NCBI GenBank assembly: GCA_973895155.1
Contig: OZ316897.1
Span: forward strand, 2,111,312 to 2,175,311
Source: Marsupella aquatica
Lineage: Eukaryota > Plantae > Marchantiophyta
Direction of reading: 5' to 3'
Length of the DNA: 64,000 nucleotides
Part shown: piece by piece, positions 5,172 through 30,612 of the stretch
Position numbering within the stretch: position 1 is the stretch's first letter
Layout: each line of letters opens with the position of its first letter
The notes under the pieces: generated by a model
Told to the model about the DNA's origin: nothing
The model's database searches: none
The model's input: the letters and a program-made list of their open reading frames with translations, nothing else
Made by a program: the position numbers and the translations under genes

Positions 5172-5341
5172 GAGTACATTGCTGACAGATATGCAAGTTA
5201 AATATACCACAAGTTAATGCGCTGAGTACATTGCTGACAGATATGCAAGTTAAATATACCACAAGTTAATGCGCTGAGTACATTGCTGACAGATATGCAA
5301 GTTAAATATTCCACAAGTTAATGCGCTGAGTACATTGCTGA
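5172..5341. repeat. 52-bp minisatellite, three full copies plus a fourth interrupted by the large transposon
   Basis: Unit GAGTACATTGCTGACAGATATGCAAGTTAAATATACCACAAGTTAATGCGCT starts at 5172, 5224, 5276 and 5328. The fourth copy breaks after TGCTGA (5341) and resumes at 29269. Confidence 0.95.
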
Positions 5342-5367
5342 TACGGTGTTCGAAATGTTGCGGGGAG
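5342..5367 (+). repeat. Left terminal inverted repeat
   Basis: TACGGTGTTCGAAATGTTGCGGGGAG; the reverse complement of 29243-29268 is TACGGTGTTTGAAATGTTGCGGGGAG (one mismatch). Confidence 0.95.
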
Positions 5368-5907
5368 TTTTTTCCAGAAAAAGAGTCTAAAGAGAGAAAA
5401 TATTCAATATTTCACAAGAAAAATACAAATACCCAAACTTATTTTGTAGGATACCCTAAAGTGTAATTTGCACGTGTTTGAATTAATTTGAAATAATTTC
5501 TCACTCACTTCAGTAATTCAACAAAAACATTTTGAACATTATCATGTGATACATAAAATCATTCACATATGAATTATGTTTTTAAAATATTCTAACAAAA
5601 TTTATATTTTTTCTCCACTTTTTGAAATTTAAAAACTATTTCGTCCTTCATTTTTGTATACAATATTTTGAAAATTTTCAATCCTTGAAATCACAAACTC
5701 ATGAGTGAAAACTCACAAAATATTTCCTACACCGAACAAAAAAAATTCAAAGAGCAAAACATAACGTTCAAGCAAGATTGAGAGTAAAACACATTTATAT
5801 ACCAAATCAATGAAGAAGCAAAAAAAGTTGACCAAAATAAATCATCTTGAAAAGTGTGAATGTTTTTTTCTCTCCTTACATAGTTGTTTTTTCTCTGTAC
5901 GGTTCCG

Positions 5908-6004
5908 TAAAGTGAAAATTTCTCCCCTTATCTACAAGCCAACCAGAAATGTCCAAGTGTACTTTTTGTTGGCTCGTAGACACGGGGAGAAAATTTGTAC
6001 TTTA
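5908..6004. repeat. Subterminal imperfect palindrome containing the TIR core motif GGGGAGAAA
   Basis: 5908-5943 TAAAGTGAAAATTTCTCCCCTTATCTACAAGCCAAC pairs with 5968-6004, whose reverse complement is TAAAGTACAAATTTTCTCCCCGTGTCTACGAGCCAAC. Confidence 0.8.
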
Positions 6005-7259
6005 CTCAGCCAATACTTTTAAGTTTCAAGGAAAGAAGAGGCCAACCTGAAGGATTAGGTTAGTCATCTGGGAAGAATGTTGTTACTCCATATCTACGAG
6101 TTTCAACCATGGCCAAGTAAGTCATTGATGGATTTACTCTTCCCAATGGATTTGACTCGTCTATCATTGGGACATGGGCCTTGATCACAACAGACAAGCA
6201 CCTCCTTCTTGCCTTCTATTTTTATGAAATTTATTAGTCCACTCTAATTGAGATAGGGAGTATATCATTCTGAGGTGGGTGGGATCCTCAAAGGACAAAT
6301 CGTGCATCCCTCAATGGCAAAATTAGAGATGTTATGGAGCAACTAGAGGCCTGGTGTTGACTGCTGAATAAACAATTACCCCCAAATGTTGACATGCTTA
6401 AAGTTACTAATTATATAGGTCTACAAGTCCTTTATACCTCTACATCCTTCAATGCTTGTCTTTTGGATTGGAAAATATTGGGCATCCAAGCACAGGATAG
6501 TATATATCGGGCTTAAAAGTGTCTTTCTTGTTGAATCATGATGAAAATGTTTATGTTTGTGCATCCTGCAATGCTTGTCTTTTGGACAATATTGGCCTTA
6601 GAAGTGCCTTTCTTGTTGAATCATGATGAAACTGCAAGTACTCCTCAAGGTTGTAAGAGCTGACAGTTTATTTCTTTGCAGGTTCTACAAAAACACTCTT
6701 GTGCCACTACTCTCAATGGAACGTTAATATATTTACTAATGTGTCAAAAATATTTTGAACTGACTCTTTGGTAGAAGTTTTGGGATTCAAAATGATCAGT
6801 TCCATCCAGGCTATGATAGAGACATTATTGTGAAGTTTGAACAGTCCAAAGTCTTTACCAACCATTACACAAGATAGATTAATAAATAGCAATTTCTGTC
6901 AACTTTGAAATGAACTCTCAATCACATTACTTAAAATCAAAGTACACTCTGTTGCCTCCAAACTCAAAGATAAGTAATTTTTGCCTTAAATACTAATTCT
7001 TGATGATTAGCAAGCTAGATAAAAAAATAACTATTGGAGGCTATCCGGTATCCAACAATGTTTTCTTCTGTGATCCTTCCAAGCCATTGCATTTCTATCG
7101 TCTCTTGTAGAGTGTATAACCTGAAAATCCTGAAAAAACAACATGATATATTCACATTAATGATACTGAGAAAAAACAATACGAGTTTCCACAATACAAT
7201 TAACACATGCAACGGTTGAAAAATTACCTTTGTTGAATCTTATCAGAAGATAATAATCC

Positions 7260-10200
7260 TTATAACTTGCCGTAGGCGGTGTTGAAACTAGCCATGACCA
7301 ACTTGGAGTGCATCACTTCCACATTTGGATATGCAGGAATATCAATTTGTTTAGAACAGGTGGATGCAATAGGCAAAGAGCTCGAAGGTCGACTAGGGCT
7401 AAAATTCACATGACATATTGTACCTGCATTGTATTTCTCATCTGTAATAAACCTATATAATCTATAGGTTTCAACACCAGAAAATTGACCAATTGCTTCT
7501 TGAAATAAGTCTTTCAATGCTGGTGGAAAATCTATTGAATATCTGACCCTTGACAAAAACTCTCTATTTGTGATTCCTTGTTGCGCACTGAAAAATGCTT
7601 GCATGGCTTTCACAGAGACGTCTTTAAATGTACTTGTCAACACAAGCTTCTTTTCAGCCTCATTAATGAAGGGAGATGCCATCACAGTCTTCGCCAATGA
7701 GAAGAATCCGTCATGAAGTAGTGCACCAACCATGCTGCAAGCTCCAAATAGAGTCTCATATATGATATCTGCATACAGTTTTGTAGTTGCTTTCTGAAAT
7801 GCTTCAGTTGACCAGTTTGGGTCAAGTGTTACAACTCTGCAATAATATTCAGGCATTATATCCTCCATGCTGTCAATGAGACCCTCTCTCGATTCTTCAA
7901 GAGCATTAATCAAAGACTGCATGAAACCATACCTGCAATAAAAAATTAGTTTGATCATTACCTATAAAATTAAGATCACAGTATAAAATGAGAAGACAAT
8001 AATATCATAGAAATAATGTATAACAAAAAAGTGCACGGTTCCCACTAGGTACATTTACATACCATGTTGGTCGAACAGCTCGAAAATCTTCTATATAAAT
8101 TGATCGTTTTGTTTTTTCTTGTTGCACTTGCATGTAAATATCTTCACGGGAGGGACATTTACCCATGGCATGAGCAATTGTGGCCATTGTGATTGGACGA
8201 TGAACTTGTTTCTTTTTCAATATGAGAAGAAACATGAGTTGACCAACAAGTTGAACCTGATGGAATATGACAAGTAAAAACCTAGTTAAAATCAATAACA
8301 TTAAAAAAATTGAAGCAATGATATAAACCACTGAAACAGTCTGGAACACTTCAATTGAATAATATTTTAAAAACTTTACATTGTTATTTATGACTTACAT
8401 CTTTCTTGGAGATTTATGTAAACTGTTTTTGGAATTAAGATGATGAAGCCCGCCACATCCCTCTGTGAAAACTGCATGGAATTCCTGCATTGCATAAATA
8501 TGTTAATTATGATTCAAGGTTGAATTGCATGACTAGTCCCCGGACTAGTCTTGAACAAAATTATTGATTCATGATCAAGAAAACTTACTGCACTTCCACT
8601 AAACAGAGTCTTCCAAGCCCCTGTCAACAATCGACTTGTGACACCCCCTGCATCTACAGTTTCAGATTCCTCCAGTGTTACTTCTCCACTATGTGTTGTG
8701 TAGATTAACTTTGCTGCAAAATCTCCAAATATCTCTTGTCTTCTCAAGGCTTCTTGGCACATCTTTTGAATAGCAGTTAACTCATCACCGTCATAAAACT
8801 GCACAGACAAAATAAAGCTATTTAGATGTATAAACTTAAATGCAAAATGACATTAAATACAACAAGGCTATAGATAAGTATGAACATTTTCAAGACTGGG
8901 TTTCTTTTGTTTCTACATTACCTGAATTCGAATTTGTGGAACCTGCCTATAGAGTTTCCGAAAGTGAGAAAGTCCAATGTCAGAAATCTGATGGACCCTT
9001 AACAAGTATTTTGTCCTTTCAATTTCTTTTTTGGCTTCAATGTACATATTTTCACAACTTGTAAGCGTCGGTTCTTCAAGCTGACATTTTCCAATCCATT
9101 CAATGTATTCGTCGCGCAGAGAGATAATGCGGGCTTCTGAAAATTTCCCTTTCCCGTATGATGGAGTAAGCAAATAATCTCTGAAATAATGCTCAACAAT
9201 CCACAGTATGTTGTTAAATTCAACAATGAAAACTATTCACTTTAAATTTACAAAAATCATAATTTTAATGGAATGCATTCAGCTCACTGCATCTGATGAA
9301 AATGAACACTTAAATAAACATGTCAACCATTAATTACCTGAAGATTTGTAATGATCTGTCCAAATCGTTTTGAACAAACTCAGGAACAAGATCGGGTATG
9401 AGTTTTTGCAATTGTTCCCACATGTGCCACCTTGGAATGGCTGCTGCCTCAAAATAGTATCCAAAGTCATACTTGGTATACGAACTTAGGCCTTCTAAAC
9501 CATTTAACACTGGTGTAACAAAATCTTCCAGCATTGCATCTGATAATCCCAATTTTGCTTCTCTTCGATGTTGAAGGAATTCCAGATCTGCACAAGCAAC
9601 TGTCGCATCCATTTTATTGCGTTCCTCTACTAAAACGGCATCAAAATTTTCCCAAAAGATTGCCATGGCTTGATTTGGTGCTTGATCCACAGGCAACTTT
9701 ATGTCTTTATCCAATTTTTGAAGCCGCTCTTGTGCTGCACAATACGCATCTAGCAGGGCTGACGTCTCTGTCTCACTTGTTATAAGATCGTCCTCAAATC
9801 GGTCATTCTCGGGTGTGCCTGTACAATCACAAAATAGTTCTAAAAATATTCAACCATCCACTCAAGCCTACATATTATAAGAATCAATCCAAACCCGAAT
9901 CAAAATCCTTAACTCTAAATCCTGAACCCTAATCAACACACAATTCTGACATTTTCACTTACCTCTTTGTAGTAATCTTGATTGTCTTTCAATAACCTCT
10001 TCATTTTCCAATATAATGGGACTATGAACAGTCCCTACAAGGCTTACTTCATTCTCATGTCTTGAAGATCCAAAGACTAGGGCTCCTTGTGCAGGTATAG
10101 CTTCGTTCAAAACACCTCTGGTTCTTGAAGTTTGAAATGAATGAGCTCGTAAAGGTAAAGTTGGCAGTAATAATGCACCTGTATCATGTTTCACAATTAC

Positions 10201-13200
10201 CCAACACATTAGGGTTGGATTGTCAGATTGCTTTCACTCACATAGCCACTCTGTACCCTTTTTAATATATATTATGATTTCATGGCAGCATTGTTAACCT
10301 ACTATCGCCTTACTGTAGACATCTTGAAAAGCCTTACATACTACAGTAAAGCATCTCAAGCTTGGTATCCAGATTGAGCTTCGGCCATAACTGTAACTCA
10401 AGACTTAGATATATAGAAACTTTACAAAAGTTGTATGAGGTCAGGCAAGGGAATCCACATGAAGAGACCAGAGCATCTAATGGAGAGCAATAGAGCAATA
10501 ATTAGCACGCTGAGAAAAGCAAAATAATGTCTTGAGAATTCCTTATACAAAAGTTGACCAAAAGACCAATGACTTAGTATGCCAATGATTTACCATTTAA
10601 TTACTCTACTCTCCTAAATGCAAGTGTACATTATGATCAGAACTGTGATGAGTGCAATATGATTTCATTTTACTCAGCAGAACTAAAGAATGTTTTTGCT
10701 TCAAAGCTTTGGCTGGCTGCACACAAGCCTATGATGCTAGACACTCCATTTGTTCCTCATACTAATCAGCGTTGATGGAAAATACCATGGCTGCTACGGT
10801 TTGAAGTGTGTACTAAGGGTCTTCCTCTTGAACTAAGAAAACATGTACAAACTTGCTTCAACACGCTTGCAATAAAAAACTCATTGGTCGGTAGTCGATC
10901 TTGAAGTGGCCAAACTTTCAAGATTCCCCAATGCTTTCATCAGTTAATTGTTTTGTTGCACTAAAATGCAAAAGAAGGAAACACCTGAATCAGGATTGGG
11001 GCTCATCCGGGGGCTCATCTTGCATACCACAAGTAAGCTTTGGAGCATCAATCACCCCACCTGTCTCTGCTCCATATCTACTGGAGTTTGTTTGGAATCA
11101 TGTCACCTATAACTCCAGGGTCATAGGAAGTGCTTTTCTCAAAATGGCCAACAACCAACCTTGATCAGCAGGGTCAGTGGATGTCAATTCGAGGGCTGCA
11201 TCCTGGGGCCATGATTACCTGGTAATGAGCATCAAGTATTCCACTTGCAGTGATTCCATCACAGTCACTAGGAGTTTGGTTCCAGTAAGGCTCATTCTGG
11301 AGTCAGGGCTGTAAGTGAGAGTAATATGGAGAGAAGAGGGCCATTGACCTGTTGGAGTGGATTGGATTGATAGGGTCATTCCACTGTAGTTTCAAAGAAA
11401 AAGCATCTCCAAAAATCTATTGGCAAGGTGTTGACAGATAAACAAAAGGACTGCCCACAACAAGGCAGACAAACAGAACACCACCAGAAGCGCACAACAA
11501 AAACCATGTTGGTCAAAAATTTAAAGGATGCGGTACAAAATGCACAACCAAGAAGAGCAATCATTTGCAGCCCATAGCCTCATTCAGAACATGCTTTCAT
11601 AGATCTTACATATGCATGTTGTGCAATACTAATTTCATACGTACACCTACAAACTAACCCCCACCCATGCTAACATGTAAGAAATTGAATAATTATTAAA
11701 CTAAAGTGATCTATGGCCAAGGAAACTCAAAGGATGCACGTACTTGAGTCACCATGGGGTGAAGACGAGCTGTCATTGGGCTGGGTTTGAAACTCAGAAG
11801 TCGAAGGGTTTCCCAATTGAGGTGACGAGCTCGTTAATGGAGATGACAAATTAGAGGATCTTCTTGACAGATTTTGCGGGGCTTCAAACCAGAACAATGC
11901 AATAAGCAATTAGATACCTAATTCGATCAATTACATAGAAGCTACACTATATAATCCATAAAGCTTCATGGTGTATTTTTCACATCAATGGAGCTAGAAA
12001 TGATTTACCTGTTACTCAATATTACTTGTGCATCGATCAAGACAAATGAAGTTGATATCCTTACCTGTCAAAGTTATTGTGGGGTCGTGCAAGTTTTCTG
12101 TCTCCTCAATCCCTTCAGACTCAGAAGCTGCAAAGCTCGAGTTTGAGCTCTCTCTTTGAGTGTTAGAATTCCATGACTGTGAAGGACTTTGGGCATGTTC
12201 TGTTTCATTTTCAAATGCCCGACGATGCTCTGTCGTTGGAGAATCTTCTGAATAGACAAAAGTTTCAATTAATATGCAAATCATATCCAAAGACTTGCTG
12301 GGAAAGAGCAGAAAAATGTCATAATCTAAGAATCTAGTAACAATGATGACAAAAATGTTTGCTTGCTTTACCTGGACGTGCAGTCGAGTGACCATGGATA
12401 TTTCGTCTGGTATCTCGTTTACGTCGACGTGTTCCTTGTGAAGGCACAATAATTGTTGCACCTGAACAACCAGCCGCCTCAACATGGTAATGTCTTATTT
12501 GTTGTGGCGTCATTTGACAAGAGGGGTCTGGAATGTATACTACTTTATCAAACCGAGACACGTTTCTCCATTCGGTGTCCCCCGATAGAAAATATGAATC
12601 TAGTGTTGCACCACCTAGTTTGTCCAGGTCGTCTCTGTGTTGCCCAACATTTGTCATTCTCAAAAAGCATCCTGATATGTCAGCGTAACCAGTATTTTGG
12701 GCCCATTCTTGAGATGCCACAATTTCCCGAATATGCCACTGAGCAGTATTTTCCCGGAATTGACCTCCATCATAGACACCACCCCAAGGCGTTGACCCAG
12801 GTAGACTAACATATATTGGAGGCCTGAATTTTTTCACTCTTCGCATGTAGCAACTCTGATTGCCTGTGTCCACTTGTTGTGCCTCTCAAATTTGTTGAGG
12901 ACAATATATAGCACGACTCACTGGTTTATCATAATTCCTTCGATTGCAAATTATTGGAGGAGGTCTTGCAATCATCTGTCTCCTTCCTCTGTTTGCCGCA
13001 CCTCCACCTCTGTTTCCTCCACCTCCACATCTATTTGATCCACGTCCAGATTCTCCTTCAGGTTGATAATTGTATTGGTGATACGAGGCTGGGAATGTTG
13101 GAAATTCATATAGTGGAAGTGTCACTGGCTCAGTAGTTTCCCGAGGACCCGATTGTGTACTAGTTCCTAGTGGGATCATCCTCGAATTTCTGTTGTATCC

Positions 13201-13251
13201 TTGGACAGGGTTTCTCTGACAAGGATCTCGACTATCAGTAGGTTCATCCAT
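7260..13251 (-). pseudogene. Multi-exon HECT-domain E3 ubiquitin ligase gene inside the transposon, with at least one in-frame stop
   Basis: HECT N-lobe motif ETVDAGGVTSRLLTGAWKTLF (ORF 8514-8810). C-lobe LYRFIT...LPIASTC(S)KQIDIPAY...KLVMA...AYGKL*, with catalytic Cys codon at 7356-7358 and an aromatic residue at -4 from the end. GT-AG junctions link several ORF pieces in frame (12372/12247, 12065/11881, ~9962/9819, ~9339/9181, ~8922/8798, ~8063/7932). In-frame TGA at 12886-12888. Exons between ~10200 and 11700 and around 8260-8590 are not resolved. Confidence 0.8.
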
Positions 13252-14208
13252 ATTGCAATTCTGAATGCAACGCAAGATTGAAACCCAAGATCCAAATGGC
13301 CAAGAACCTGAGGCTCTGCTCTAGTTCATTACTACTTTTGCGAACAGAGTGCAAAGTGTCGAGCTCAAAGGCAGATATCACCGAGTAGTACAAATTATCT
13401 TATATTATGAGCAGAAAGTAATAGATGTTGTTAGAGTACAGCCGCCATTTCAAGAATTTGGTGAACATTAGTATCACATTAACTTCCAGTACATATCATA
13501 TTTGTTAACAATCATCTCATCATAATGAAGACTAGCTACCGCAGCTCTTTTTAGCCCTCGGATACATAATTGCCAAAAGCGGGTTACCGTATTTCTTATT
13601 TTCTTTAGAAAGACACTGCTACGCATGTAAGATGATTGAACTATTGTAAACTATAGTATTGTAGCTAGTAGTACACTCCAAACTATTCAAAGTTAGAGAC
13701 ATGCATGAAAGAAATAAGTATTTTAAAATTGTGTCGATTATTAAGGTCCAATTAGAAACATCCAAAATTTATAATTAACAAGAACTTTACATGTCACCAA
13801 ACAATTATGTTTGTTGGATTTGACTTGTCAATGGTGAAGAGTGGGCATCGTGACTTATTCCCCAAGTGAAGGTTGGAAAAACTAGTGTGAAGAATATGAT
13901 TGGTTCATGTGCACGAATGATACATATTTTTTGGTGCCAAATTCCAATAGAAAGTTCGATAGTAAACGAGGCAATAGCTATTACAAAAAAATCCCTACCA
14001 TTGATATCTATTGATGAATGGTCAGTAATTTGTAACATTGGTTAGTATGCATGAATTTAATTGTAAAAAACAAACATAATGTGGTAGCTTGTGTGACAGT
14101 TATAACGCATGTGGGATTCATGCCATTTGCCACTTGCAAAATGACAGTTAATGCTAGCGACAAATTGGGTTGAGCCTCTTATGGGATTCAGGGAGATGTT
14201 TCAATGAT

Positions 14209-14980
14209 TTGTCATTCAATGCACCTCGATTCTCCCCCACATCGGCAAATACAGAATGCTCTCTCCCCATTTTTGGGTCCCGCTTCAGTTTCAGGCCAGC
14301 CCCATTTTTGGGTCCCCGTTCAGTCTTGAGAAGGGCACACCGGCACAGATTCTGGAGGAGAATCTAATGCTCGATTGTTTTAACTAGGCTATAATAACTG
14401 AATGTAGTCGGGTGGCCGAGGGAGGGAGGCGCAGGGCTGGCCGTGGCAGGGTTCGTGGCAAGTGGTGAGGCAGGCAAGGGCGCTGGGGCTCGCCGTGGCA
14501 GAAAGGAAGGAGGGCGGCATGTGGGCTGGCCGGGGCCGTCGTGAGTGGTGAGGCAGGCGAGGGCGCTGGGGCTCGCCGTGGCAGAAAGGAAGGAGAGCGG
14601 CGTGCGGGCTGGCCGTGGCAGGAAGGAGGGAGGTAGCCGGGTGGCCGAGGGAGGGAGGGGACTCAGGCGGCCAAGGGAGAGGGGCAGTCGTGCGGCCAAG
14701 GAGGAAGGGCGCAGGGCTGGCCGTGGCAGGAAGGAGGGAGGAAGGTAGTCACGGCCGAGGGAGGGAGAGACTCAACCGGGAGTCGGTAGTCCCGCGCATT
14801 CAGGGAGACGAGTCCCTGAATTGTCATTCAATGCACCTCGATTCTCCCCCATAGCCCACCGGAATACTCTCTCCATTGTTGTGTCTCACTTTCAAGCCAA
14901 CCCCATTTTTGGGTCCCAGTTCAGTTTTGAGGAGGGCACAGATTTTTGATTGAGGAGTTCTAATGTTTGATGGTTTAACT
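14209..14980. repeat. Two ~170-bp direct repeats flanking a GC-rich island of short repeats
   Basis: TTGTCATTCAATGCACCTCGATTCTCCCCCA...CCCCATTTTTGGGTCCC..TTCAGT..TGAG.AGGGCACA...CTAATG..TTTAACT at ~14209-14385 and ~14821-14980. Between them GGCCGTGGCAG / GAAGGA(A)GGAGGG motifs recur. Confidence 0.75.
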
Positions 14981-17356
14981 TATTCACAAATAATGTAAAA
15001 CTATAATATTAATTTTAAAAATATCAATATATTTAATAAAAATATATAATTATTATAAAATATTAAATGGTAATGAGCATGGAGAATTGACGCATAGAAC
15101 TAGTGTGTGACCTAGTGGTATTGGAGGTCAGTTGAGACTAAGACGTGGCGTGTTCAAGGCACACGATGGGCAACTTTTCTTTTCTTTGATTGAGGGCATG
15201 GAAAGGAATGAACTTTGGAGGGGGCGGGGGTGTCTCATTGTATTTGAAAATGAAAATGGTAAATGAGATATATATGGTTCAAGTAGTTTGGAGATAGCAA
15301 AAATAACAAAGGAAACACCCATGAGAGCCAAGGAGATAAATTAACCTCTTTTGTTAATTTCCTATACCTGCCCATTGTTGTGAGGTGCCAATCATGTTCC
15401 TGGTGGGTAGTTGCTTTCAGTTTTAGGAAGAATCCAACAAAAGAGGTTAGAAGTCAAAAGGCAAACAATATTAGAGGTGGTGTTGACAAGAGAAGAAAAG
15501 CCTTGTGCAACAAGCTGAGAAACCAGTAAGACAAACGAAAGCCCCTATGAAAAAGGCACAAAACCAACCCAGCAGACGGCCCCTATGAAGTCCAAAAGTG
15601 TGTGGTAGAGAAGACAACAGGGCCAGGAGTGGTAAGTGTGCTCCAATTGACAGGTTTTGAAAGTTTGCAAGGAATTGGTGCAAGCATGGGTCTGAATTCT
15701 TTGAGTGTCTTGACAAATGTGTCAAGCACAACACCTTTGGTACACTTGTATTCCAGGGTAGCCAACTTAGACTATTTCCAACCTTGTATGTAGAAAAGAT
15801 ATGTGATTGAGTGATTAATTGTAGGGCGGTAGACTGCCGTTGGCTTCTAGGTTTTCTATTGATTTGAAAACAAATTTCATGAATAAAGTTTTGTTTCTTA
15901 TACAATAAGATGTGTGCTTACCATAAATGGTTTAGGAGATAAATGGTTTTTTTATGTGATCATGTCTCCTCAACTTTTTTGTTGCTGCTATATGGCGCAT
16001 CCTTGGTTCATATCCCCAAGTCCAATTTTTTTGGACATTATTTACGGACCCCCATGGGAAGTTCCTTCCAAAATCCCTGGCACCATGTTGAGCCACATCA
16101 GCAGGAATGGCCACAAATAAGAAAATCTAGATGTGAAAGAAGAACAAAACCTGATGGTTCGTGTTTGTGACAAGGCAAAAAAAACTGTCAATCCTGGTAA
16201 CTGTAAAAATGAGAAAAAAAACTGAAGAGTAAAGTTGAAACAAACAAAGAATGAGGTAAAGAGTACTTAACACTTGGAAGTTCTAGAATTGATATATCAG
16301 TGTTTTGCATTAAATGTTAGATTTTTTCTAATTTCAAAAGATTTTTAAATAAACACTGCTAGAGGAAGTAGAAACAAACTGTTGGGCTTCCAAGATTTTG
16401 TAATAAGTATTTGGTGAAGTAACAAATTGTTGGGTTTCCAAAGTTTTGTAATAAATATTTGATAAAGTAAAAACAAACTGTTGGGTTTCCAAGCACTGGT
16501 AACCGCAATAAGTTGTAGATGGTACGTTTTAGATGGCTTGAGATGACAAAGGGAATGGCTTGATGACTTGAGATAACATGACAAAGCTAATGGCTACCCT
16601 TATACTCTTAGATCTGGCAATTTACCCCTCACCCAAGCCAGTTTTTGGTGAATTTAGTAGGAATATTAAATCCCTCCTGCAAGTTACAAACAAATCCTGC
16701 TACTTACATTATTTGGCAATTCCTCCTACTAATAGATGGAGTAGACAAATGTCTTGCAGATTGGGAAACCCTTAAACCACAACTCCAGATATATATACCT
16801 GTAGCTCTCATTTCCACTATGAATGAAGGGATGGGCAAGAGTGTTCTTTCATTGATCCAATTTGTTGAATGTATTCAAGTTTATCTGTCTCAGGGGGTCC
16901 TCATACTAATTTAATTTTTATGCCTGGCTCTGATGGGTGTCTCCTTTGTTATTTTTTCTATCTCCAAATTACTTGAACCCCTCATATATATCTCATTTGC
17001 CATTTCCATTTTCAAATACAATTAGACACCCCGGCCCCCTCTAACGTTCATTCTTTTCCATGCCCTCAATCAAAGGAAAGAAAAGTTGCCTGTCATGTGC
17101 CTTGAACACGTCACCCCCTAGTCTCAACTGAGCTTCAATACCACTAGGTCACACACTAGTTCTATGCGTCAATTCTCCATGCTCATTACCATTGAATATT
17201 TTAGAATTATTTTATATTTTATCTTAAAAAATATATTGATATTTTTAAAATTGATATTATAGTTTTATGTCATTTTTGAATAAGTTAAAAACGTCAAGCA
17301 TTAGAACTCCTCAAAAATCTGTGCCCTCCTCAAAACTGAAGGGGGACCCAAAAATG
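14904..17356. repeat. Long imperfect inverted repeat (~440-bp arms 14904-15344 and 16911-17356, ~1.6-kb spacer); possible nested foldback or non-autonomous element
   Basis: For example GGTAATGAGCATGGAGAATTGACGCATAGAACTAGTGTGTGACCTAGTGGTATTG (~15069-15123) is the exact reverse complement of ~17136-17190. Similarity extends over the whole arms. No TSD found. Confidence 0.85.
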
Positions 17357-19554: not shown

Positions 19555-20940
19555 AGTCAAATTTTGATTCTAAGCTTGGTTTCCCTGAAACTTTGCCAAC
19601 ATAGTCGTGACTCTATCTTCCAAAATCTGGCAAAGTTTGAGTGCATTCCATGCAACAAATGTTGCCCTACAAAATTTGAGCAACTCGCAACTTTTTATAA
19701 GTCAAATTTTGTCGATTTCATATCTTTTGATCATTTTGTTTTTTCAGTTTTGATTCTGAGCTCGGTTTTCCCTGAAACTTTGCCAACACACTTGTGACTC
19801 TTTCTTCTAAAATCTGGCAAAGTTTGAGTGCATTGTGTGCAGCAAATGTTGCCCTACGAAATTCGAGCAACTCGCAACTTTTTTTAGGTCAAATTTTATC
19901 GAGTTTGTATCTCTTGATCGTTTTGTTTTTTTTAGTTTCAATTCTGAGCTTGGTTTTCCCTGAAACTTTGCCAGCACGGTCGTGACTCTTTCTTCTAAAA
20001 TCTGGCAAAGTTTGAGTGCATTCTGTGCAGCAAATGTTGCCCTACGAAATTCGAGCAACTCGCAGCTTTTTTTAGGTCAAATTTTATCGAGTTCGTATCT
20101 CTTGATTGTTTTGTTTTTTCAGTTTCGATTCTGAGCTCGGTTTTCCCTGAAACTTTGCCAGCACGGTCGTGACTCTTTCTTCTAAAATCTGGCAAAGTTT
20201 GAGTGCATTCTGTGTAGCAAATGTTGCCCTACGAAATTCGAGCAACTCGCAGCTTTTTTTAGGTCAAATTTTATCGAGTTTGTATCTCTTTATCGTTTTC
20301 TTTTTTCAGTTTCGATTCTGAGTTCGGTTTTCCCTGAAACTTTGCCAGCACGGTCGTGACTCTTTCTTCTAAAATCTGGCAAAGTTTGAGTGTATTTTGT
20401 GCAGCAAATGTTGCCCTACAAAATTCGAGTAACTCGCAGCTTTTTTTAGGTCAAATTTTATCGAGTTCGTATCTCTTGATTGTTTTGTTTTTTCAGTTTC
20501 GATTCTGAGCTCGGTTTTCCCTAAAACTTTGCCAGCACGGTCGTGACTCTTTCTTCTAAGATTTGGCAAAGTTTGAGTGCATTCTGTGCAGCAAATGTTG
20601 CCCTACAAAATTCGAGTAACTCGCAGCTTTTTTTAGGTCAAATTTTATCGAGTTCGTATCTCTTGATCGTTTGTTTTCTTCAGTTTTGATTCTGAGCTCG
20701 GTTTTCCCTGAAACTTTGCCAGCACAGTCGTGACTCTTTCTTCTAAGATCTGACAAAGTTTGAGTGCATTCTGTGCAGCAAATGTTGCCCTACAAAATTT
20801 GAGCAACTTGCAGCTTTTTTTAGGTGTCATTTTCTGGCAAAGTTTGAGTGCATTTCATCATGAGAATGCTGCCCTAGAAAATCGGAGAGAGTTACAGGTT
20901 TCCTTAGGTCCAATACTATCGATTTCAATCTCCTGATCAC
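19555..20940. repeat. 187-bp tandem array, about 7 copies, high identity, CpG-rich
   Basis: Unit GTCGTGACTCTTTCTTCTAAAATCTGGCAAAGTTTGAGTGCATTCTGTGCAGCAAATGTTGCCCTACGAAATTCGAGCAACTCGCAG... The period is confirmed by near-identical ORFs offset by 187 and 374 bp (20195, 20569, 20756). Confidence 0.95.
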
Positions 20941-21784
20941 CATGGCGTTTGACAAGACCACCACCATTGTTGATGTGGATATTCTATTCACAATCTTCAA
21001 CGGAGGAAGATTTGTAAGTGAAGTAAGGCTTTCTGAATTTAGCTCTTTGGATTAGGTTGTGTTATTTCAGTTTGTTTGTCCATGAGCTCATTATGCCCTG
21101 TCTGTTACAAGTCACTTTTACAGATGCAGCGTTGACTCTAAAATCAAGTCTCACATTGCTAAGTTCGTGCACTGGATGACACCCTACCTGATACACCGTA
21201 TCTTCAATTTTTAGGTATGTTACATACTACCATAGGAGAAATTTTGCGATTCACATTTTGTATGGTGGGCTAATGTTAGCTTTGTTGCTGTTTGCCGTCC
21301 AACATAATTTTTGAACTAGGATGACAAGAATCCATTCTAAATTTAAGCTTTTTCCTAGGTTGTCTTTCTATTGCACATAGTTTGACAAATCATTGAGAAT
21401 TTAAATCATTTTACAGGTTACTCAATATGGAAGGACTGAAAGACAAAATAAAAAAGAAGAAGAAGTGAGACTCCAATTCTAAAGGTAAGATATTTTCTCA
21501 CTACTAATATACTTTGAGATCAGAAAATGTTTGGAATATATTTGAAACCAGTACACATTTTGTGAGGCCAATTCATTGTCAGGTGAATATATTGATAGTT
21601 GACCTATTGGGGGGGCGTGACTTCCCGTATAGTGGAAGAAACCTCATTATCCGGTGGCCGATACAGTCTATATTCTATGGCTTTGTTTTGTGTCCGAAAT
21701 GTTTAGCATATTTGATACTCATCGTAGGTTTATATTTGTTATTTTTACTGCAAATTTAAGATGAAACTCTTTTTTCTTTTATAG

Positions 21785-23124
21785 GGCAAAAAAACAGTGA
21801 AGGTATCTTCCGAGAGGTTCTCTGCAACATCTCTTTATTTCTGCGAAATCATCAAGCTTGCTCAAAAAGCTGGTGGGAAAGCAGGACATTTTCATACAAA
21901 AATTCTATGTAAGTGGTTGTTGGGCGAATACTATCTTTTCGATTATGGAGTACAGATATTATCTGAGGGAAACCTAAAAGGAAATCAGTCAACCTTTTTT
22001 GATGGTTTTCACAGTTTAAGAAGAGATGAAAGTTGGATTGCTTGGTTTGATGAAAAAGAATGGAGTAGCATCAATCATATGATAATGAATCGTTACAATC
22101 TATCATCTGTTGGGAGAGGCTTATCAGATCGGATACAGAAGTTCCGAACTGATCCAGACATGTATCTAAGAAGTAAGAAAGATCATTACCAGAAATTTGG
22201 AAAATCCCGTATAAAGTTTACAAATTTCACCAAGAAATCTTCCGATTTTGTTGGTAGATTTTCCTCCAGCTATTTGATTGAGGAAGATTTGGAAACACCT
22301 TGGGCAAATCGAATTATAGTCTGGAGACCGATGATCGAGCCTTTTTACAAGATGAATATTTCATCAAGAGTGGAGATTTGGATAGATGGTGATGAAATCA
22401 TTGGAGGTCGGATGAAAGGAGGTGTTCCAGAGAAAGATAGATCTTTTGTTCAGTTGTTTGTGGAAGAAATATGGAATGATAAATATACAATGAAGAGGTC
22501 AAATACACGATCTGCATTGAAAAATGTCATGAGGGCAATTGGCCCATTAGTGAACTGGCGAGAAGGGAAAGGTAATCATTTTGTGAGCTTCTACCGTAAC
22601 AAGTTGAAGATATCACAAACACAGGATCCTACTGTGGTTCAGTTAGAATTGCTCTATGAGCAATGTGCACATCGATTACTGTTTGAAATTATTTTTATTC
22701 TTTCTGTGAACACTTCTGGCCAGTGGTGGAGAGTTTTATTGAGATTATGCCTCCAATGATGGAACTTAGCAGTGAGCTTTTGGCTTGTTTTTCAAAGCCT
22801 GAACTCATGAAAAAAGCCATTCTTGCATATCCTTTATTCATCACAAAGGACTATTGCAATGAAGTTCATACAGATGTAGATGAAAGCGAGTTTACAATGT
22901 TCATGGCATGTAATCCATCGAATGAAAGTAGAGGTGGAGATTTAGTGATGCTAAAATATGGAATTAAAATTCCAATTTTAGATGGAGATTTGTTTTTTGT
23001 TCGGGGTCAAGATCCTCATGCTACATCGTATAGAAGTCCACCAATGAAACCAGTATATGTAGTTGGAATTGCCGTAAACCAAAAACTTGGCAATGCTTAT
23101 GAGTTTCAAGGTGAAAGTAATTAA
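21785..23124 (+). pseudogene. TET/JBP-like (Tet-like) Fe(II) dioxygenase gene with a 1-nt frameshift near 22752; 5' exons unresolved
   Basis: Acceptor TTTTATAG at 21784 opens in frame with ORF 21797-22759. Overlapping ORF 22723-23124 reads FITKDYCNEVHTDVD...RGGDLVMLKYGIKIPILDGDLFFVRGQDPHAT...VVGIAVNQKL, giving HxD (22867-22875), GG-x-L, GD and a distal His (23017-23019) with double-stranded beta-helix spacing. Adding one C in CTCCAATG fuses the two frames (RLCLPMMEL). Confidence 0.7.
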
Positions 23125-23560
23125 ATAAATTTTGTGATACACTGAGATTAGCTATGCGGGTTTTCTTTTGGTCTATTTTTTTGTTTATTATTATGGTGGA
23201 TTTGGTTATAATGGTGTACTATATATCTTGATGCTAAAGTTTTTAGTTTATCTTCTTGTTATAGAATTTTTGTTCATTGGTGCTTGTGGCTGTAATATGA
23301 CTTGTGAGTTTTTAATAGGTTCAAGAAAGCCAATGAAAATTTTAAAAATGTCATTTGCTTCCAAATTGGGAATCATCAACAATTATTTATGAACAGACAG
23401 CGTTGGGGCCAAGCTTACAAGAGCAATAGTCAATTGCTGTAGAAAACAAAAATTGAATGACTACTGTTATTTGTATTTGTATATGGTTGCAGGTGTTAAA
23501 ATTGTTAGTTGATGAAACTGTGGAGTATAATCTATACTCAACCCACGCTGGACAATCAAT

Positions 23561-25232
23561 ATGAATGATCCAGATTTTCAACAGTATACAGATGTAAAAA
23601 GAGCTCTCGACCTAGGGTACACTATGAATGAATGTGCAGATGCACTTGGTGTACATAGAGTGACTCTATGGAAATGCCTCAAAAACTTTGATATTGAGCA
23701 TAGAATATATCCCCGATATACTTTAGAAAATGTTTGCTCTCTTATTACCGAGATTGTACCAATCCATGGATATGCTGAAGATTGGGGAATACGTTTTGTT
23801 AGAGCACGTTTAAAAAGGGCTGGTTATAAAATCTCACTAGCACTTGTCAGAAATGCTTTGGACACATTACTTCCTGGTGTACTTGAAGGAAGGGCACGAA
23901 GATGCATCATAAGGAGATTTTATGATGTAATTGAGCCAATGCATCTGTGGCATATGGATTGTAAGTAGAACATCTATGTCTCTTCTAAATTTTTCCTGCT
24001 TTTATATTGAAGTTAACTTTAGAATAGATCCTCAATACTAATAGATTGTTTGGAAATTGAATGCAGCGTATGATAAATTGACGCAATGGGGATTCGGAAT
24101 TCATGGTGCAATTGATGGGGCTAGACACTTTGTTCCATGGATGCATGTGGCATTGAACAAGAAAGCGCAGACTCTATATGTGGGATATAAGACAGCCATA
24201 CTTAGATTTGGTCATCCATTGATGATTCGTTCTGATTATGCAACAGAACATGTTTTGGTAAGAAGAAACCTTGAAAGAGCAAGACCAAGTACAAATTGTT
24301 TTCGCATGGGGTCTTCTGTTCATAATCAGGTAATGTTTCTGATTAACAAGAACATATAGAGTGGTTCATTTCATATTTCATGTCATCAATTGCAGCTTGG
24401 AAATTCTGTAAATTTGAAATCAATTTTGTGCAGGTACTTATATTTGTATCCTATCATGTATGTTTTGGCAGAGAATTGAGGCATTTTGGAACTACATGAA
24501 ACAAAAAGGAACTAATCACTTCAAGAAGACTTTATATGACTTATCATGTGTGGAAGGATTTTTACAAATTGATATCCCACTTCATAGATATTGTATGGTT
24601 ACTGTGATTCTTCCTTTACTACAAGAGGCTGTAAATGATGTGGTTTTAACATGGAATGCACATACTGTGAGAGCTGTGCAGACTGGAGGTATGTTGAGAC
24701 CATCACATATTCCAGAACTTGCATTTCAATCACGAGAAAGAGAAGCTAGAATTATTCAGCCTCCACCTTATGCCGAAGAAGCTCAGGTGGATATCGAACA
24801 AGAAGATGACATCATCGATCCAATGGGAATTGATTATTGGAATCACAACAATGATCGTGGAAACTTTGAAGATCGCATAAACGATTTGAATGATGAAGTA
24901 AGCATTGTTTTGTATTATTATTAATGTTCATGTGAATTATGAAATGATGATGTAAGAAATACTTTTGTTTATATGCCCTTATTCATGTTTTATTTCTTTT
25001 GCAGAATCTACAATACATTCGTGATATTGCATATGAAAGGAACCAAGTGACAGTCACAACTGCAAAAGACAAATTGCGAATGCATCTTCTTCTTTCTATA
25101 GAGTGTCAAAATAGTATGGACGCTTCATTGGACTTGGAGGACTATGTACAAAATGAATTAGGGCTACCTAATTTATCAGATGGTAGATTATGGGCCTTAA
25201 GATCCTTGCAACAAACATTACAGATTATATGA
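23561..25232 (+). CDS. IS3EU-type DDE transposase (integrase core domain), 4 exons, 438 aa, intact
   Basis: Exons 23561-23960, 24067-24329, 24472-24897 and 25005-25232 with GT-AG introns total 1317 nt and stay open. N-terminal HTH (TMNECADALGVHRVTLWK), GIRFVRARL, then WHMDSYDKLTQWGFGIHGAIDG ... PLMIRSDYATEH ... GSSVHNQRIEAFW supplying the D, D, E triad. Confidence 0.92.
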
Positions 25233-25379
25233 CTGACACAATATGTGAGGTAATGTAATAGTTTACCAGTGACACAAACACTTCTTCTTGAGGCTTTAGC
25301 AATATTCGAAGAAATTATTTTCTAGTCTATTGGCTTAAGAGATACTTGTTCATGTTTTGAGCCCATAATTTTGCTCTCA

Positions 25380-28340
25380 TCCTAGTATTTAACCTAGCTT
25401 TGGACCCTTGTCTGAAAATGCCAATAATTAAATCCTTGATTTTTTTTCATAAATTTGCATCCAAGACTAAGCATGCCTGGTATTTTGATTCCAAATCCAC
25501 TCTCACAATGTTGGTTTGAAATTTCCTTGGCGAGTTGTGGTGGGGCAAGTTGATTCAAGTCCTTTATATTTTGTTATAATGGTCCTCCTATTTACCCTAA
25601 CTTTGGACCCTAACTAGCTTGTCTCAAAAAAATGACAAGAACAAATCCTCAATATTTTGTTGTGTATTTATAGCATAGACTGAGCCCAATATTGTGATTC
25701 AAAATCCACTTACACTTTGAAGGTTGAATCTTTCCTAATGGTGGTGGTGGAGCAAGTTTGTGATCTACCTTTGTATTTTTTGTCATGGTAGTCCCATTTA
25801 CCCTACCTTTGGACCCTTGACTTGGACAATGTCAAGAAATAAATCTTCATTAATGTAATGTGTCTTTACACCCTAGACTAAGCCCAGGACCAAGCTTGAC
25901 CTGGTGATTCCAACTTTGCTCTCACTTTGTGGGTTCCATCTTTCTTTGCTCACTTGTTTGGTGGAGCTAGTTTCTTTATCGTCCTAAGTTGTATTTTTGT
26001 TATTTACTCTAAGTGACCCTAGCTTTAGACCCAACCTAGCCTGAAGAAACCAGATCCTCATAACTTGTTTATGTTGTACACCCTCCATTTACAATGATTG
26101 TTGTCATTGGACAAACTCTCACTTTGTTGGTTTCACCTTTTTTAAGTCACTTCTGTAGTGGAGCAAGAGTATTCAATTCATTTCTATATTTTGCTCTAGG
26201 AGAGCTTATTGTCCTTTAGGCCCTTGTCTCAAAATGCCAAGCGTCAAATCCTCATAATTTTGTCACAAGTTCACACCCTGGACTAAGCATGGTATTTTCA
26301 TTCATAATCTGCCTGTCACATTGTTGGTTTGACATTTTCTTGGTCAGTTGTGTGGTGGATCAAGTTTGTTCTCATCCTTTGTATTTTGGATATGATCTTC
26401 TCATTTACCCTACCTTTAGACCTTGATTGAGCAAAATCCCAAGATACAAATCCCCATTATTTTGTTGAGTATTTACACCCTTAGTAGACTGAGCCTGGCT
26501 TGGCTCATTCCAAATCCACTCTCACTTTGCTGGTTCAGCATTTTCTTGGCCAGTTATGTGGTGCACCAAGTAGGTCCAAGTCCTTTGTATACTTGTCATG
26601 GTCTTCCCATTTAACCCTAACTTTGACCGTTATTTTAAGAAAATGCCAAGACACAAATCCTCAAAATTTATTTGTGCTTTTCACCATATGCTTAGACTAA
26701 TTATATTGTGATCAGATATCTGCTCACTTTGTTGGTTTCATTTTTCCTTAGCCATTTGTGTGAGGGAGCATGTTTGTTCAACTCCTTTGTAATTTGGTTA
26801 TGATGCTCTCATTTACCCTAGCTTTGGAACCTTGTTTCAAGTAAATGTCAAAATACAAATCCACCTAGTTTCTCCATTTATTTACACCCTTGATTGAGCC
26901 TGGTCCTGTGATTTCAAATCCACTCTCATTTTGCTGGTTGCAGATTTTCTTGCTAAGTCATGGAATGGAGTGAGTTTGTTCAAGTCCTTGTTAATTGTGT
27001 TATAGTTCTCCTATAATTTACCCTATTTGACTTTGGACTCTTGTCAGATTAGGGAAATGCCAAAACACAAATGTTCATTATTTGTTTTTGTATTTAAACC
27101 TTAGGCTGAGCCTCATATTGTGAATCAAAATTGTTGATTTTCATTTTTGTTCTTTAGTCAATTGTGTGGGGGAACAAGTTTGTTCTTATCCTTTGTATTA
27201 TTTTTCATTTTGATCTTCCCATTTACCCTAGCTTTGGAGCCTTGTTAGAAATGTCAAGATACAAATTCACATAATTTCTCCATTTATTTACACCTTTGAT
27301 TGAATCTGGTTTGGTGATCTCAAACCCACTTTTATTTTGCTGGTTGCACATTTTCTTGGGCAGTTGTGGGATGGAGCTCGCTCATTTAAGTCCTTGGTAT
27401 TTGTGTTATGGTTCTCCCATTTACCCTACTTGACTTTGGGCCTTTGTCATAGAAAAATGCCAAGAAACAAATGCTCATGGTTTTTTTTTTGCATTTACAC
27501 CTCATGCTGAGCCTCATAATGTGAATCAAAATCAGTTCTCCCTTCGTTGATTTCATTTTTCCTTAGTTAGCTATGTGAGGGAGCAAGTTTGTTCACGTTC
27601 TTTGTATTTTGGTAATGATCCTTCCATTTACCCCACTTAACTTTGGAGCCTTGTCTAAGAAAAATGCCAAGAAACAAATTCACATGATTTATTTGTGTAT
27701 TTACCCCTAAGGCTAAAGCCTGATATTGTGATTTGAAATGTGCTCTCACTTTATTGGTTTCATTTTTAGTTATTTTTAGTTATGTAGGGGAGAAAGTCAT
27801 TTGTATTTTGGTTAATATGAGCTTCCCATTTACCTTAGCTTTGGATCTTTCTTTCAAAAAAATGTCAAGAAGCAAATTAACATAACTTTTTACACCCTAG
27901 ATTTAGTGGGCCTTGGTGATTCCAAATTTGCTCCCACTTTGCTGTCAGTTTGACATTTCTTTGGCCAATTGTGTGGTGGTGCAGGTCAATTCAAGTCCTT
28001 TGCATTTTTGTTGTGCTCTTCCCATTTACCCTAGCTGTGGACCATTGTCTTAATAAAATGCTGAGAAACAAATCGTCATATTTTCTTTGTGTATTTACAC
28101 CATAGAGCGATACCCAAATGTGTTCAAGTTGTTTGTATTTCTAAACAGTGTTGGTATTTACTCTAGTCTGGACCCCTTTGAAAGAAATTGCCAAATAATA
28201 AATGCTGATAGTTTCTTTGTGTATTTTTTAAGAGACACAGCATGACCGACCTTGTGATCGCAAATTGGTCCTGACTTTGGTGGTTCTACCTTTCCTTGAA
28301 CTGTTGTTGTTGTGGAGCAAGTATGTTGAAGCCTTAGTTA
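25380..28340. repeat. Degenerate tandem array, ~200-206-bp unit, about 14 copies, CpG-poor
   Basis: Anchor TTTACCCTA.CTTTGGA recurs at ~25389, 25591, 25797, 26015, 26404, 26611, 26812, 27017, 27222, 27420, 27627, 27829 and 28025. Each is followed by AAATG(C/T)CAAG..ACAAAT and GGAGCAAGTTTGTTC motifs. Confidence 0.88.
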
Positions 28341-29242
28341 CGCCTTTTTTTCTATGGTGATGGTTAGTCATAAAATGTGGTTAAGGTTAATGTTTACAAA
28401 ACTAGCTTGTTTATCAATTAGTTATGAATTAAAGTGTCAATGGACCAGGGTAGTATGAACAAAGTATCAGGAGGGTTTGATGTGAAAGGGGTTCCAAGAA
28501 ACACAGATAGATAGCGATAGACCACATTATCCTTACCAGAATAAAAGTTTTTTTTTTTAATAAAATGAGTTAAGTTCATATAGTCATCTGGGCAAAGCAT
28601 TTAAGTGCATGAGTTTTAATTAGTTCCTATTTATTCCCTATTTAGAAATTGGATAATTAGTTTTTCAATGTGTACAGTAGTTTGTTCAACGAATCACTTC
28701 CCCCCCCAAAAAAAACTCCCGCTTGAAAACTATTGCATGTTTCTCTCTTGAGAATGAAAACCATTTTTTAGTTCTCTAAAATAAAATAAAACCTTGGTGG
28801 TGGTGTATATTTTGTGTGTTATTTTTTCTGGATGTGCATTGTTTTTTGGGGTGACTTTTTCGGGAGAAGGTATTTTTTCCGTGAAATTTGTTCTCCCTTC
28901 AAAATGCTCCATTTTTGTTATTCCCCTAACTATCATTTGGAGTAAAACTTTTTACTTTCTCCAATATCTCAAAATTAATTTTCTCTGTAGAATTTTTTGA
29001 ATTTTTTGCTCTTTATTGAATGCTTCAAATATTTCTCACCTTATAATATTTCCAATTTTTTCCAATGTTGTGTTTGAGAAGAAAAATTATAATTACACTA
29101 TGTAGTGACCCATTTGATTATTTTTACGCATTACTAGTTATGTAATTCTGTTTTTCTCCCTTTATCTTTCAGTTCCGAATACTCTCTTTTCAGACTCTTT
29201 TCCGCAGATATTTTCTCTCGGTTCAACTTTTTAGCCGATTTT

Positions 29243-29268
29243 CTCCCCGCAACATTTCAAACACCGTA
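29243..29268 (-). repeat. Right terminal inverted repeat
   Basis: CTCCCCGCAACATTTCAAACACCGTA, immediately followed by the TSD TGCTGA. Confidence 0.95.
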
Positions 29269-29318
29269 TGCTGACAGATATGCAAGTTAAATATACCACA
29301 AGTTAATGTGCTCAGTAC
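29269..29318. repeat. Continuation of the interrupted 52-bp minisatellite copy
   Basis: TGCTGACAGATATGCAAGTTAAATATACCACAAGTTAATGTGCTCAGTAC completes the unit broken at 5341. Confidence 0.95.
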
Positions 29319-30612
29319 ACCAAAACATAAACCATTACTTTATATTTATGATCTACAAACTTTGAATGGAAACCATAACATAAACCAATACTTTATATAC
29401 ATGATCTACAAACCACATCTATATTCTTGATCTATAAACTAACTGATTTGACCTACATGTGTCTTGGTTTATGTTCTGGTTGTATGGTTGACTTAGATTT
29501 AATGCGCGGGTCTGACAAATGCCTAGATGTCCTTCCTTTGTGATCATTATGATTATCTGATCCAGAGAACAGGGAAAAGAAATTCAAGCACATAAAACTC
29601 CATACCTTTATGACTACAAGACTTTTCCCCATGTCATTTTTCTAGTAGACAATTATTTAGCTTCTAAACAATGTGAATTCCCTTAAAGAAAGTGGTGGAA
29701 CTCTCATAATGACTTTGACACATAAGTCGCTCATCACCATAACTTCATAATTAGTCAAAACTTAGATGTAGTTTAAAGGGGAGGGGTTGGCATTATCTTG
29801 AAGTGCTTGTTCCTCTACCTCCATGGATTTTTCTCAAATTTATTGGACGAGTAAGCTTAGGGTTTAAGTATCCCTCGTGTATGAAAAATTAATTTAATAT
29901 AATTTGGATATAAGGATAAGACAACATATTCTAACAAAGGATGTGTAAGATTGAAATATAAATATAGACCTAGAGAGGGAGTCTAAAAAAACAAAAATTA
30001 AAAACATTAAGAGGGGGTACTTATAATATCAAGTTCAATGATACAAAGGATTCACCGTGTCTAAATAAATTGAAACCATCATACATATATAAATATCAAC
30101 AAGACAAAGTGACCTTGGGCTCCCAAACAAGGTAACACCAGAATTTATCCCAATAGAGATTGACAAAAATGACCCTTGTTACCCCGCTCATTGCTCATTA
30201 ATTGATTTCAGCAGCCAAATTTATATCGCCAAGCCTTGAAGTAGGGTAGTGCACTCAGTAATTCTAAAGGCTTCCCTATGAGTTTCCTACTAGTTCAAGG
30301 TGTAGATGTTAGTCTTGACAAGGCTGGATGAAAAGAGTGGCCCTCATTTGCTAACAGAACATATTTTATTTTGTAGCCAACTCCCAAGCCAACTCGAGTG
30401 GCTTGGCTCAATGGTTAGCACACTTGGGTGGACCTGGGTTTCGCATGGCTAAGCCCTGATTCTTACCTGTGGGTTGTCCCAGCCTCCTGGCATTCCTCTT
30501 ATGGATGGATGAATGGACTGAATTGTAGTGCTGGTAGTGCTTTCACTAGCTTGTTCACAATCCATAGGCATCAAAGAGGGAGAGATGACAATTATCCTAG
30601 TATTATTAGATG

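Follow-up and report, generated by a model that had tools for sequence, protein, structure and literature searches.

Can a DNA transposon of a land plant carry, next to its own transposase, an enzyme of the kind that rewrites 5-methylcytosine, and, if it can, is such an enzyme part of the element or a stray passenger in it? This question is raised by a stretch of 64,000 nucleotides from Marsupella aquatica (contig OZ316897.1), referred to here in its full length as the window, in which positions 5342-29268 are occupied by a giant mobile element. In the textbook view, land plants demethylate their DNA with the ROS1/DME glycosylases and lack enzymes of the TET type. A first-pass annotation had nonetheless described the locus as a giant element of the IS3EU type with a DDE transposase, a dioxygenase of the TET/JBP fold and a HECT ligase, and this composition is supported by the analysis reported here, which also places the element between flanks of plant-like appearance. 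We consider it highly probable that the locus represents a single, recent, full-length and autonomous transposon of the IS3EU/GingerRoot superfamily, carrying a divergent TET/JBP-fold dioxygenase together with a HECT gene, in a layout of fungal type in which HECT replaces an alpha-kinase.

Read in the 64-kb window, the ends of the element, the duplication that surrounds them, and the host repeat on either side define 5342-29268 as one insertion of 23,927 bp. The left terminal inverted repeat (5342-5367, plus strand), which starts with TACGG, pairs with the right one (29243-29268, minus strand), which ends in CCGTA, with a single mismatch in 26 bp; this is the sole such pair in the window, and no chance match was obtained in 100 shuffles. 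Beyond a 30-bp indel, the two ends have another stretch of roughly 30 bp in common. Immediately outside the termini, which read TAC..GTA, or in full TACGG..CCGTA, lies the target-site duplication TGCTGA, at 5336-5341 on the left and at 29269-29274 on the right. The target was a 52-bp tandem repeat of the host (5172-5341; 3.3 copies, 99% matches), one unit of which is split by the element, and the right flank (29269-29320) resumes that unit exactly at the break point of the left flank. When the element and one copy of TGCTGA are excised in silico, a whole 52-bp unit is restored with one mismatch, which argues that the element entered as one piece and provides, in fact, an empty site within the sequence itself. 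The 26-bp inverted repeats, the TAC..GTA ends and the 6-bp duplication previously proposed for this element were therefore all borne out, with the restored host repeat as an addition. An alternative reading from this single copy, with the ends ATAC..GTAT and a 4-bp duplication GCTG, also fits.

The transposase (23561-25232, plus strand) had been described as intact and of the integrase type, and so we found it, although as a spliced gene. Its four exons (23561-23960, 24067-24329, 24472-24897 and 25005-25232) are all open in frame with GT-AG borders when the DNA is read exon by exon, for a total of about 438 residues. The Pfam integrase core rva_4, which we take to correspond to IS3EU, matches the open frames 24057-24359 (E 4.3e-14) and 24460-24924 (E 2.1e-7), and the portions of the profile covered by the two matches (positions 17-104 and 103-171) abut across intron 2, as expected of one gene split by an intron. 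Indirect support for this exon model comes from the indels listed among copies in public sequencing runs, all of which fall in introns or intergenic DNA and thus outside the predicted coding exons, with the exception of a T that restores the frame of the dioxygenase. In exon 1, weak Pfam matches to helix-turn-helix (HTH) families point to an HTH-like stretch, and no HHCC motif was found there, while the catalytic residues predicted from the sequence are the D in WHMD, the D in RSDYATE, and the E in NQRIEAFW. The element thus combines an integrase-type DDE transposase devoid of HHCC with a 6-bp duplication and TA..TA termini with inverted repeats, and on the basis of its ends, the length of its duplication and its integrase core we regard it as a probable member of the IS3EU/GingerRoot superfamily.

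The dioxygenase proved to be a member of a very small family. Among 5.8 billion clustered proteins, a single one, P0001, is closely related to its two frames (21797-22759 and 22723-23124); it has 479 residues and is encoded on a 2.3-kb Logan contig, and an exhaustive HMMER search of 1.84 billion representatives returned only 27 relatives. The family has an N-terminal helical domain of its own, of 130 residues, and the core of its alignment reads AY-LFITKDYC---H-D-D-S--T ... GD-F-F-----HGT. In alignment A3, which covers the C-terminal catalytic half, there is no variation at H56, D58 and D60 and almost none at H106; the H-x-D...H iron triad aligns with H345-x-D347 and H397 of CMD1, and the window copy keeps it in the form HTDVD ... 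PHAT. Among the 28 members, just two Pfam families turn up repeatedly, PF20515 (Tet-like, in five members, 1.4e-3 at best) and PF12851 (Tet_JBP, in two, 2.9e-4 at best), and all of these matches are below threshold. When the A3 profile was compared with the sequences of the PDB, CMD1 was the sole match (E 2.7e-4), with the H-x-D and HGT motifs aligned; P0001 alone reached CMD1 at E 0.48, and no TET match was returned from the same database with the C-terminal frame alone or with the full-length profile A1.

Comparison at the structural level pointed to the same group of enzymes. An AlphaFold model was built with the family alignment on P0001, that is, on a relative and not on the window copy (mean pLDDT 75.7). 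A Foldseek search of this model against the PDB returned CcTet (1.6e-8), CMD1 (1.8e-6), NgTET1 (1.2e-5) and TET2 (1.9e-5), and ranked these four ahead of plant and microbial oxygenases. With VIA-align, an independent aligner, Z scores were 16.4 for TET2, 15.7 for CMD1, 13.7 for NgTET1 and 13.3 for CcTet, and other oxygenases did not exceed 12.1. Based on this model, we assign the dioxygenase to the TET/JBP fold, of which it would be a far outlier.

As it stands in the window, the dioxygenase gene (21761-23124, plus strand) shows homology over 21797-23115, a stop codon at 23122-23124 and a frame break at about 22700. Comparison of P0001 with the window by tblastn gave two segments, of 48% and 62% identity, that lie in different frames and meet at 22702 without a gap in the query. 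An intron at this position was ruled out, given that the segments abut in this way and that the window is one T short of other copies, reading TTT where these have TTTT. The contig that encodes P0001 is in phase at this point, the frame is continuous across the break site both in P0001 and in a 44%-identical metagenome relative with an unbroken frame (L005; contig Ga0066793_10026251, 1-3211), and contigs from three public runs all have the extra T behind 22700. The window copy may be frameshifted, or a base may have been dropped from the homopolymer during assembly, and the contigs would fit either explanation. Of the two spliced cargo genes that the first-pass annotation had claimed, both are present, but the splice at 22702 in the dioxygenase is in reality a missing T. 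At the other end of the gene, an in-frame ATG (21761), located 36 bp upstream of the start of homology, is followed seven codons on by a TAG (21782-21784), which doubles as the end of a polypyrimidine-AG splice acceptor and might mark a splice site or, alternatively, a second mutation that inactivates the gene. A fused dioxygenase-transposase protein was likewise ruled out, as the stop is placed as in P0001, 437 bp before the ATG of the transposase.

The second cargo gene lies on the opposite strand. Its last exon (7260-7958, minus strand) encodes the rear of the N-lobe and the C-lobe of a HECT domain up to the stop codon, with the catalytic Cys in the motif LPIASTC. Pfam HECT matches this exon at E 5.2e-9, its score of 36.6 bits exceeding the cut-off of 23.9, and the match extends from position 162 to 299 of a profile of 306; the HECT domain of HUWE1 matches it at E 3.6e-4, and in that alignment LPIASTC falls on LPSAHTC, the catalytic motif of HUWE1. 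The Cys sits about 30 residues from the C-terminus, where it is found in HECT ligases, and is kept in the only database relative of this frame, P0029, which is 56% identical. To judge from these alignments, we regard the HECT domain as real and its catalytic Cys as retained. Farther upstream, an open frame at 8514-8810 (minus strand) appears to hold the start of the N-lobe, with the motif VDAGGVTSRLL, of which VDAGGVT is characteristic of that part of the lobe; it has no Pfam match of its own, and its nearest clusters in the ESM Atlas, at 0.95, include a "HECT domain-containing protein (Fragment)", with a cluster that is 81% PF00632 at 0.89. Additional exons might be represented by the open frames 9334-9714, 12334-12873 and 12886-13275, in the interval 8811-13251 on the minus strand. 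From 8810 to 13251, no Pfam family was found in the HECT region and the ESM Atlas was uninformative, and hence the HECT gene claimed earlier is present with its catalytic Cys, but its part upstream of 8810 consists of open frames only. A Pfam search of the minus-strand frames between 7.2 and 13.4 kb detected no alpha-kinase domain. The frame 12334-12873, which contains QHRDD, was also evaluated as a second oxygenase and rejected, having no Pfam match and, in the ESM Atlas, a similarity of 0.75 to unrelated bacterial clusters.

Evidence that the element exists in more than one copy came from public sequencing data. Of the words sampled from 20900-25400, 9-67% were present in six runs with three organism labels, and contigs of two other organism labels cover this segment at 90-99% identity; these contigs are short and come in many variants, the picture that a multi-copy repeat would give. 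Under the label designated organism B, a single contig spans the 3' end of the dioxygenase, the spacer and the 5' end of the transposase (22850-23796), which shows that the linkage of these two genes is not private to the window copy. The neighbours of the dioxygenase relatives were not recognisable on their contigs, all of which measure 1-4 kb, and for a scan of this context the alignments A1 and A3 were not strict enough. Several of the dioxygenase relatives, as well as the sole HECT relative, derive from the Logan runs SRR18067363, SRR18067441, SRR18067545 and SRR18067572, neighbouring accessions that probably belong to one sequencing project.

Taken against the reading that we favor, that of a single autonomous transposon with two cargo genes, are some of our own observations, which should be weighed together. 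No Pfam TET family was matched by the frames of the window or by P0001, even at E 10, and the threshold for a TET assignment was not reached in these searches. The dioxygenase is frameshifted in this copy and possibly has an early stop as well. None of the public runs that contain this segment is recorded as RNA, and spliced joints were not observed in them, so that splicing is predicted from sequence. In the sequence alignment, no Arg was found 13-15 residues after the distal His, a conserved Tyr-Val being located at His+13/14 instead. The linkage of HECT to the element is observed in the window copy. Lastly, no IS3EU transposase was found within the 2.3 kb downstream of the dioxygenase relative on the metagenome contig L005, which suggests that such a gene can also occur apart from this type of transposase.

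A dioxygenase found apart from the transposase, as on L005, is also what one might see if the element were a plain IS3EU/GingerRoot transposon into which the dioxygenase and the HECT gene had come as nested insertions or one-off captures, with no role for the element itself. GingerRoot elements often carry captured fragments of host genes (PMC6839031), and in the interior of the element studied here there are indeed two repeat arrays and an inverted-repeat structure that is probably nested. However, both cargo genes consist of whole domains with their catalytic residues, rather than of fragments, the dioxygenase-transposase junction is kept in contigs with other organism labels, and the same three-gene topology recurs in the TET-carrying IS3EU families of fungi. 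We hence regard accidental capture as quite improbable.

The repeats themselves lie between the two cargo genes and past the transposase. The inverted-repeat scan identified a structure at 14901-17359, the arms of which (14901-15344 and 16911-17359) are about 450 bp long and 85-94% complementary, with a distance of about 1.6 kb between them; upstream (14262-14339), the tip of the arm is repeated in part two more times. This is probably a nested foldback or MITE-like element, or else an inverted duplication; no flanking duplication was identified around 14901-17359. A 187-bp tandem array at 19562-20825, with 6.8 copies and 93% matches, is young, and an array of about 14 degenerate units of roughly 203-207 bp at 25366-28310, in which a comparison of the units gave 60-80% identity, is old. 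Next to the inverted-repeat structure, 14454-14710 is made up of short GC-rich tandem repeats, the periods of which are 83, 40 and 25 bp; they give rise to long open frames rich in Ala, Pro and Arg on both strands, and such frames are probably non-coding. Neither RNA families nor tRNAs were found in the window with Rfam and tRNA scans.

To return to the dioxygenase of the favored transposon, the chemistry that it performs is a matter distinct from its fold. The Arg that binds the C5 carboxylate of 2-oxoglutarate is R1896 in TET2 and R289 in NgTET1, whereas CMD1 uses ascorbate and cannot use 2-oxoglutarate, its aligned Arg pointing away (PMC7854593). In the alignment of our family, Arg is common only at His+5. 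The co-substrate is uncertain, given that the 2-oxoglutarate Arg is absent and that CMD1, the closest solved protein in terms of sequence, works with ascorbate. It is possible, if on the doubtful side, that this is an enzyme with the TET/JBP fold that does not carry out TET-type oxidation of 5-methylcytosine, and that it transfers a glyceryl group from ascorbate as CMD1 does, or acts on another base or a protein, in which case its effect on silencing would be different or absent. That CMD1 is the only solved protein matched by sequence, that no counterpart exists of the Arg of TET2 and NgTET1, and that the model is matched by AlkB enzymes and generic prolyl hydroxylases as well, with Z scores of 11-12, would all be in keeping with this explanation. 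The four best structural matches, on the other hand, are all enzymes that modify 5-methylcytosine and stand above the rest, and the invariant Asp four residues past the iron His is placed beside the position at which TET2, NgTET1 and CMD1 have the residue that reads the cytosine N4.

If the transposon is what we propose, the inverted repeats with their TACGG ends would be bound by the DDE transposase encoded in the four exons, which would then excise the element and insert it through 6-bp staggered cuts. The cargo would be transcribed away from the repeat-rich centre, with the dioxygenase on the strand of the transposase and just upstream of it, and HECT on the other strand. The dioxygenase may then modify 5-methylcytosine on the DNA of the element and so weaken methylation-based silencing, and the HECT protein, although this is a guess, might tag a host silencing factor for degradation. 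With its dioxygenase frameshifted, the window copy would have to obtain that activity from sister copies in which the gene is intact. By analogy with the fungal elements, an anti-silencing role is plausible, and it matches the published reading of those elements. To go as far as proposing an active bryophyte-type transposon family with a two-part counter-silencing kit, in which CMD1- or TET-like rewriting of 5-methylcytosine, possibly by means of ascorbate, is combined with a HECT protein directed against a silencing factor, is a step that we deem rather unlikely to be correct in full. If it were true, TET-type chemistry would exist in land plants after all, and 5-methylcytosine in oxidised or glycerylated form would be expected at these elements.

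The sequences on either side of the element were examined as well. On the left, 1.5 kb from its end, a two-pore K+ channel is encoded in a single exon (2688-3842, minus strand), with two Ion_trans_2 domains and C-terminal EF hands, an architecture that is typical of plant TPK channels. On the right, part of a Ty1/copia retrotransposon, with integrase, SH3-like domain and RVT_2, is found 2.7 kb past the end (32000-34825, plus strand), followed by an intronless frame for an RNase PH-type exosome subunit (38794-39669, minus strand) and a long frame for the catalytic subunit of Rab3GAP (50145-52397, plus strand). As the latter two are ordinary host genes, the element sits in a gene-bearing region, and by their domain content the flanking genes look plant-like.

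These neighbours bear on whether the element could be fungal DNA, present as a contaminant or through a very recent transfer, rather than a resident plant transposon family. In favor of this stands that such a design has been published for fungal elements only (PMC12730594); we nevertheless judge it very improbable. The element is embedded in one contig, where it interrupts a tandem repeat of the host, with the two-pore K+ channel gene on one side and copia, RNase PH and Rab3GAP on the other; many diverged copies occur in runs with three organism labels; and the dioxygenase is nearest by sequence to a green-algal protein, CMD1.

With regard to precedent in the literature, we found no report of a TET/JBP gene, or of a transposon of this design, in a land plant, a result of a weak test, as the phrase searched probably misses the slash spelling "TET/JBP". 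Among articles that pair JBP, land plants and transposons, those examined contained JBP only in their references, or passages on land plants that mention no TET/JBP gene. A narrow literature search also returned no example of a DNA transposon with a HECT ligase among its cargo, and the HECT gene described here might be a new kind of cargo for such elements.

Among known systems, one enzyme for comparison is CMD1 of Chlamydomonas reinhardtii (PDB 7cy4), a TET homologue that generates 5-glyceryl-methylcytosine from ascorbate (PMC7854593). The dioxygenase of Marsupella shares with it a double-stranded beta-helix (Z 15.7), the aligned H-x-D and HGT motifs, and the lack of a functional Arg to hold 2-oxoglutarate by its C5 carboxylate; their identity, however, is only about 12-15%, and CMD1 is a host gene, whereas our dioxygenase is transposon cargo with its own N-terminal domain. 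An association with transposons is shared instead with CcTet and the other TET/JBP genes of KDZ/Plavaka systems in Coprinopsis and other mushrooms, and CcTet is also the best Foldseek match, but in these the transposase belongs to another superfamily, and identity to CcTet is 10-12%. In terms of function, the analogy would be with VANC, the anti-silencing factor of plant VANDAL (MuDR) transposons, which is cited as such for the fungal elements (PMC12730594); the dioxygenase bears no relation in sequence or structure to VANC, which is not an enzyme of this fold.

As for the transposon, the closest relatives in plants are the GingerRoot elements, described by Cerbin et al. in 2019 in Selaginella lepidophylla, and also detected in mosses, in two of which they are expressed (PMC6839031). 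Kojima (2023) united IS3EU and GingerRoot with 99% bootstrap, on a branch marked by TA..TA ends and 6-bp duplications (PMC10045372). IS3EU elements are accordingly not a mainly animal and fungal group, as had been assumed for this locus, their GingerRoot branch being known from Selaginella and mosses (PMC6839031, PMC10045372). Our element resembles GingerRoot in its host, a non-seed land plant, in its 6-bp duplication and TA..TA termini, in its integrase-related DDE transposase without HHCC, and in that it carries foreign sequence. GingerRoot elements, however, measure 3.9-12.9 kb, have inverted repeats of 100-150 bp, and contain captured gene fragments only, with neither a dioxygenase nor a ligase reported for them (PMC6839031), while the one studied here is 23.9 kb long, with an inverted-repeat core of 26 bp and two whole extra genes.

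A close parallel is found in fungi. Kojima (2025) described TET-carrying IS3EU families, such as IS3EU-7_PSt, in seven species of rusts and in Tuber (PMC12730594), and TET/JBP cargo is therefore not limited to the company of KDZ/Plavaka transposases, as had been believed when this locus was annotated. These families show 6-bp duplications, TAYGG..CCRTA ends, and a TET gene located between the transposase and an alpha-kinase gene on the opposite strand, with the TET gene on the strand of the transposase in three of them (PMC12730594). The Marsupella element agrees with them in its 6-bp duplication, its TACGG..CCGTA ends, its integrase-type DDE transposase, and the position of its dioxygenase between the transposase and a third gene on the opposite strand, in the orientation of the transposase, as in those three families. 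It differs from them in its gene set, with HECT as the third gene and no alpha-kinase, in its plant-like flanks, in an inverted-repeat core of 26 bp where theirs exceed 30 bp, and in a dioxygenase that is far from the Pfam TET models and whose sole solved relative by sequence is the algal CMD1. The notion of an undescribed cargo-carrying family can accordingly be kept for the plant host and the HECT cargo, both of which appear to be new, but not for the three-gene design, which is already known from fungi. That rust fungi and a plant have this layout in common could reflect shared descent or transfer, or else the repeated assembly of the same kit.

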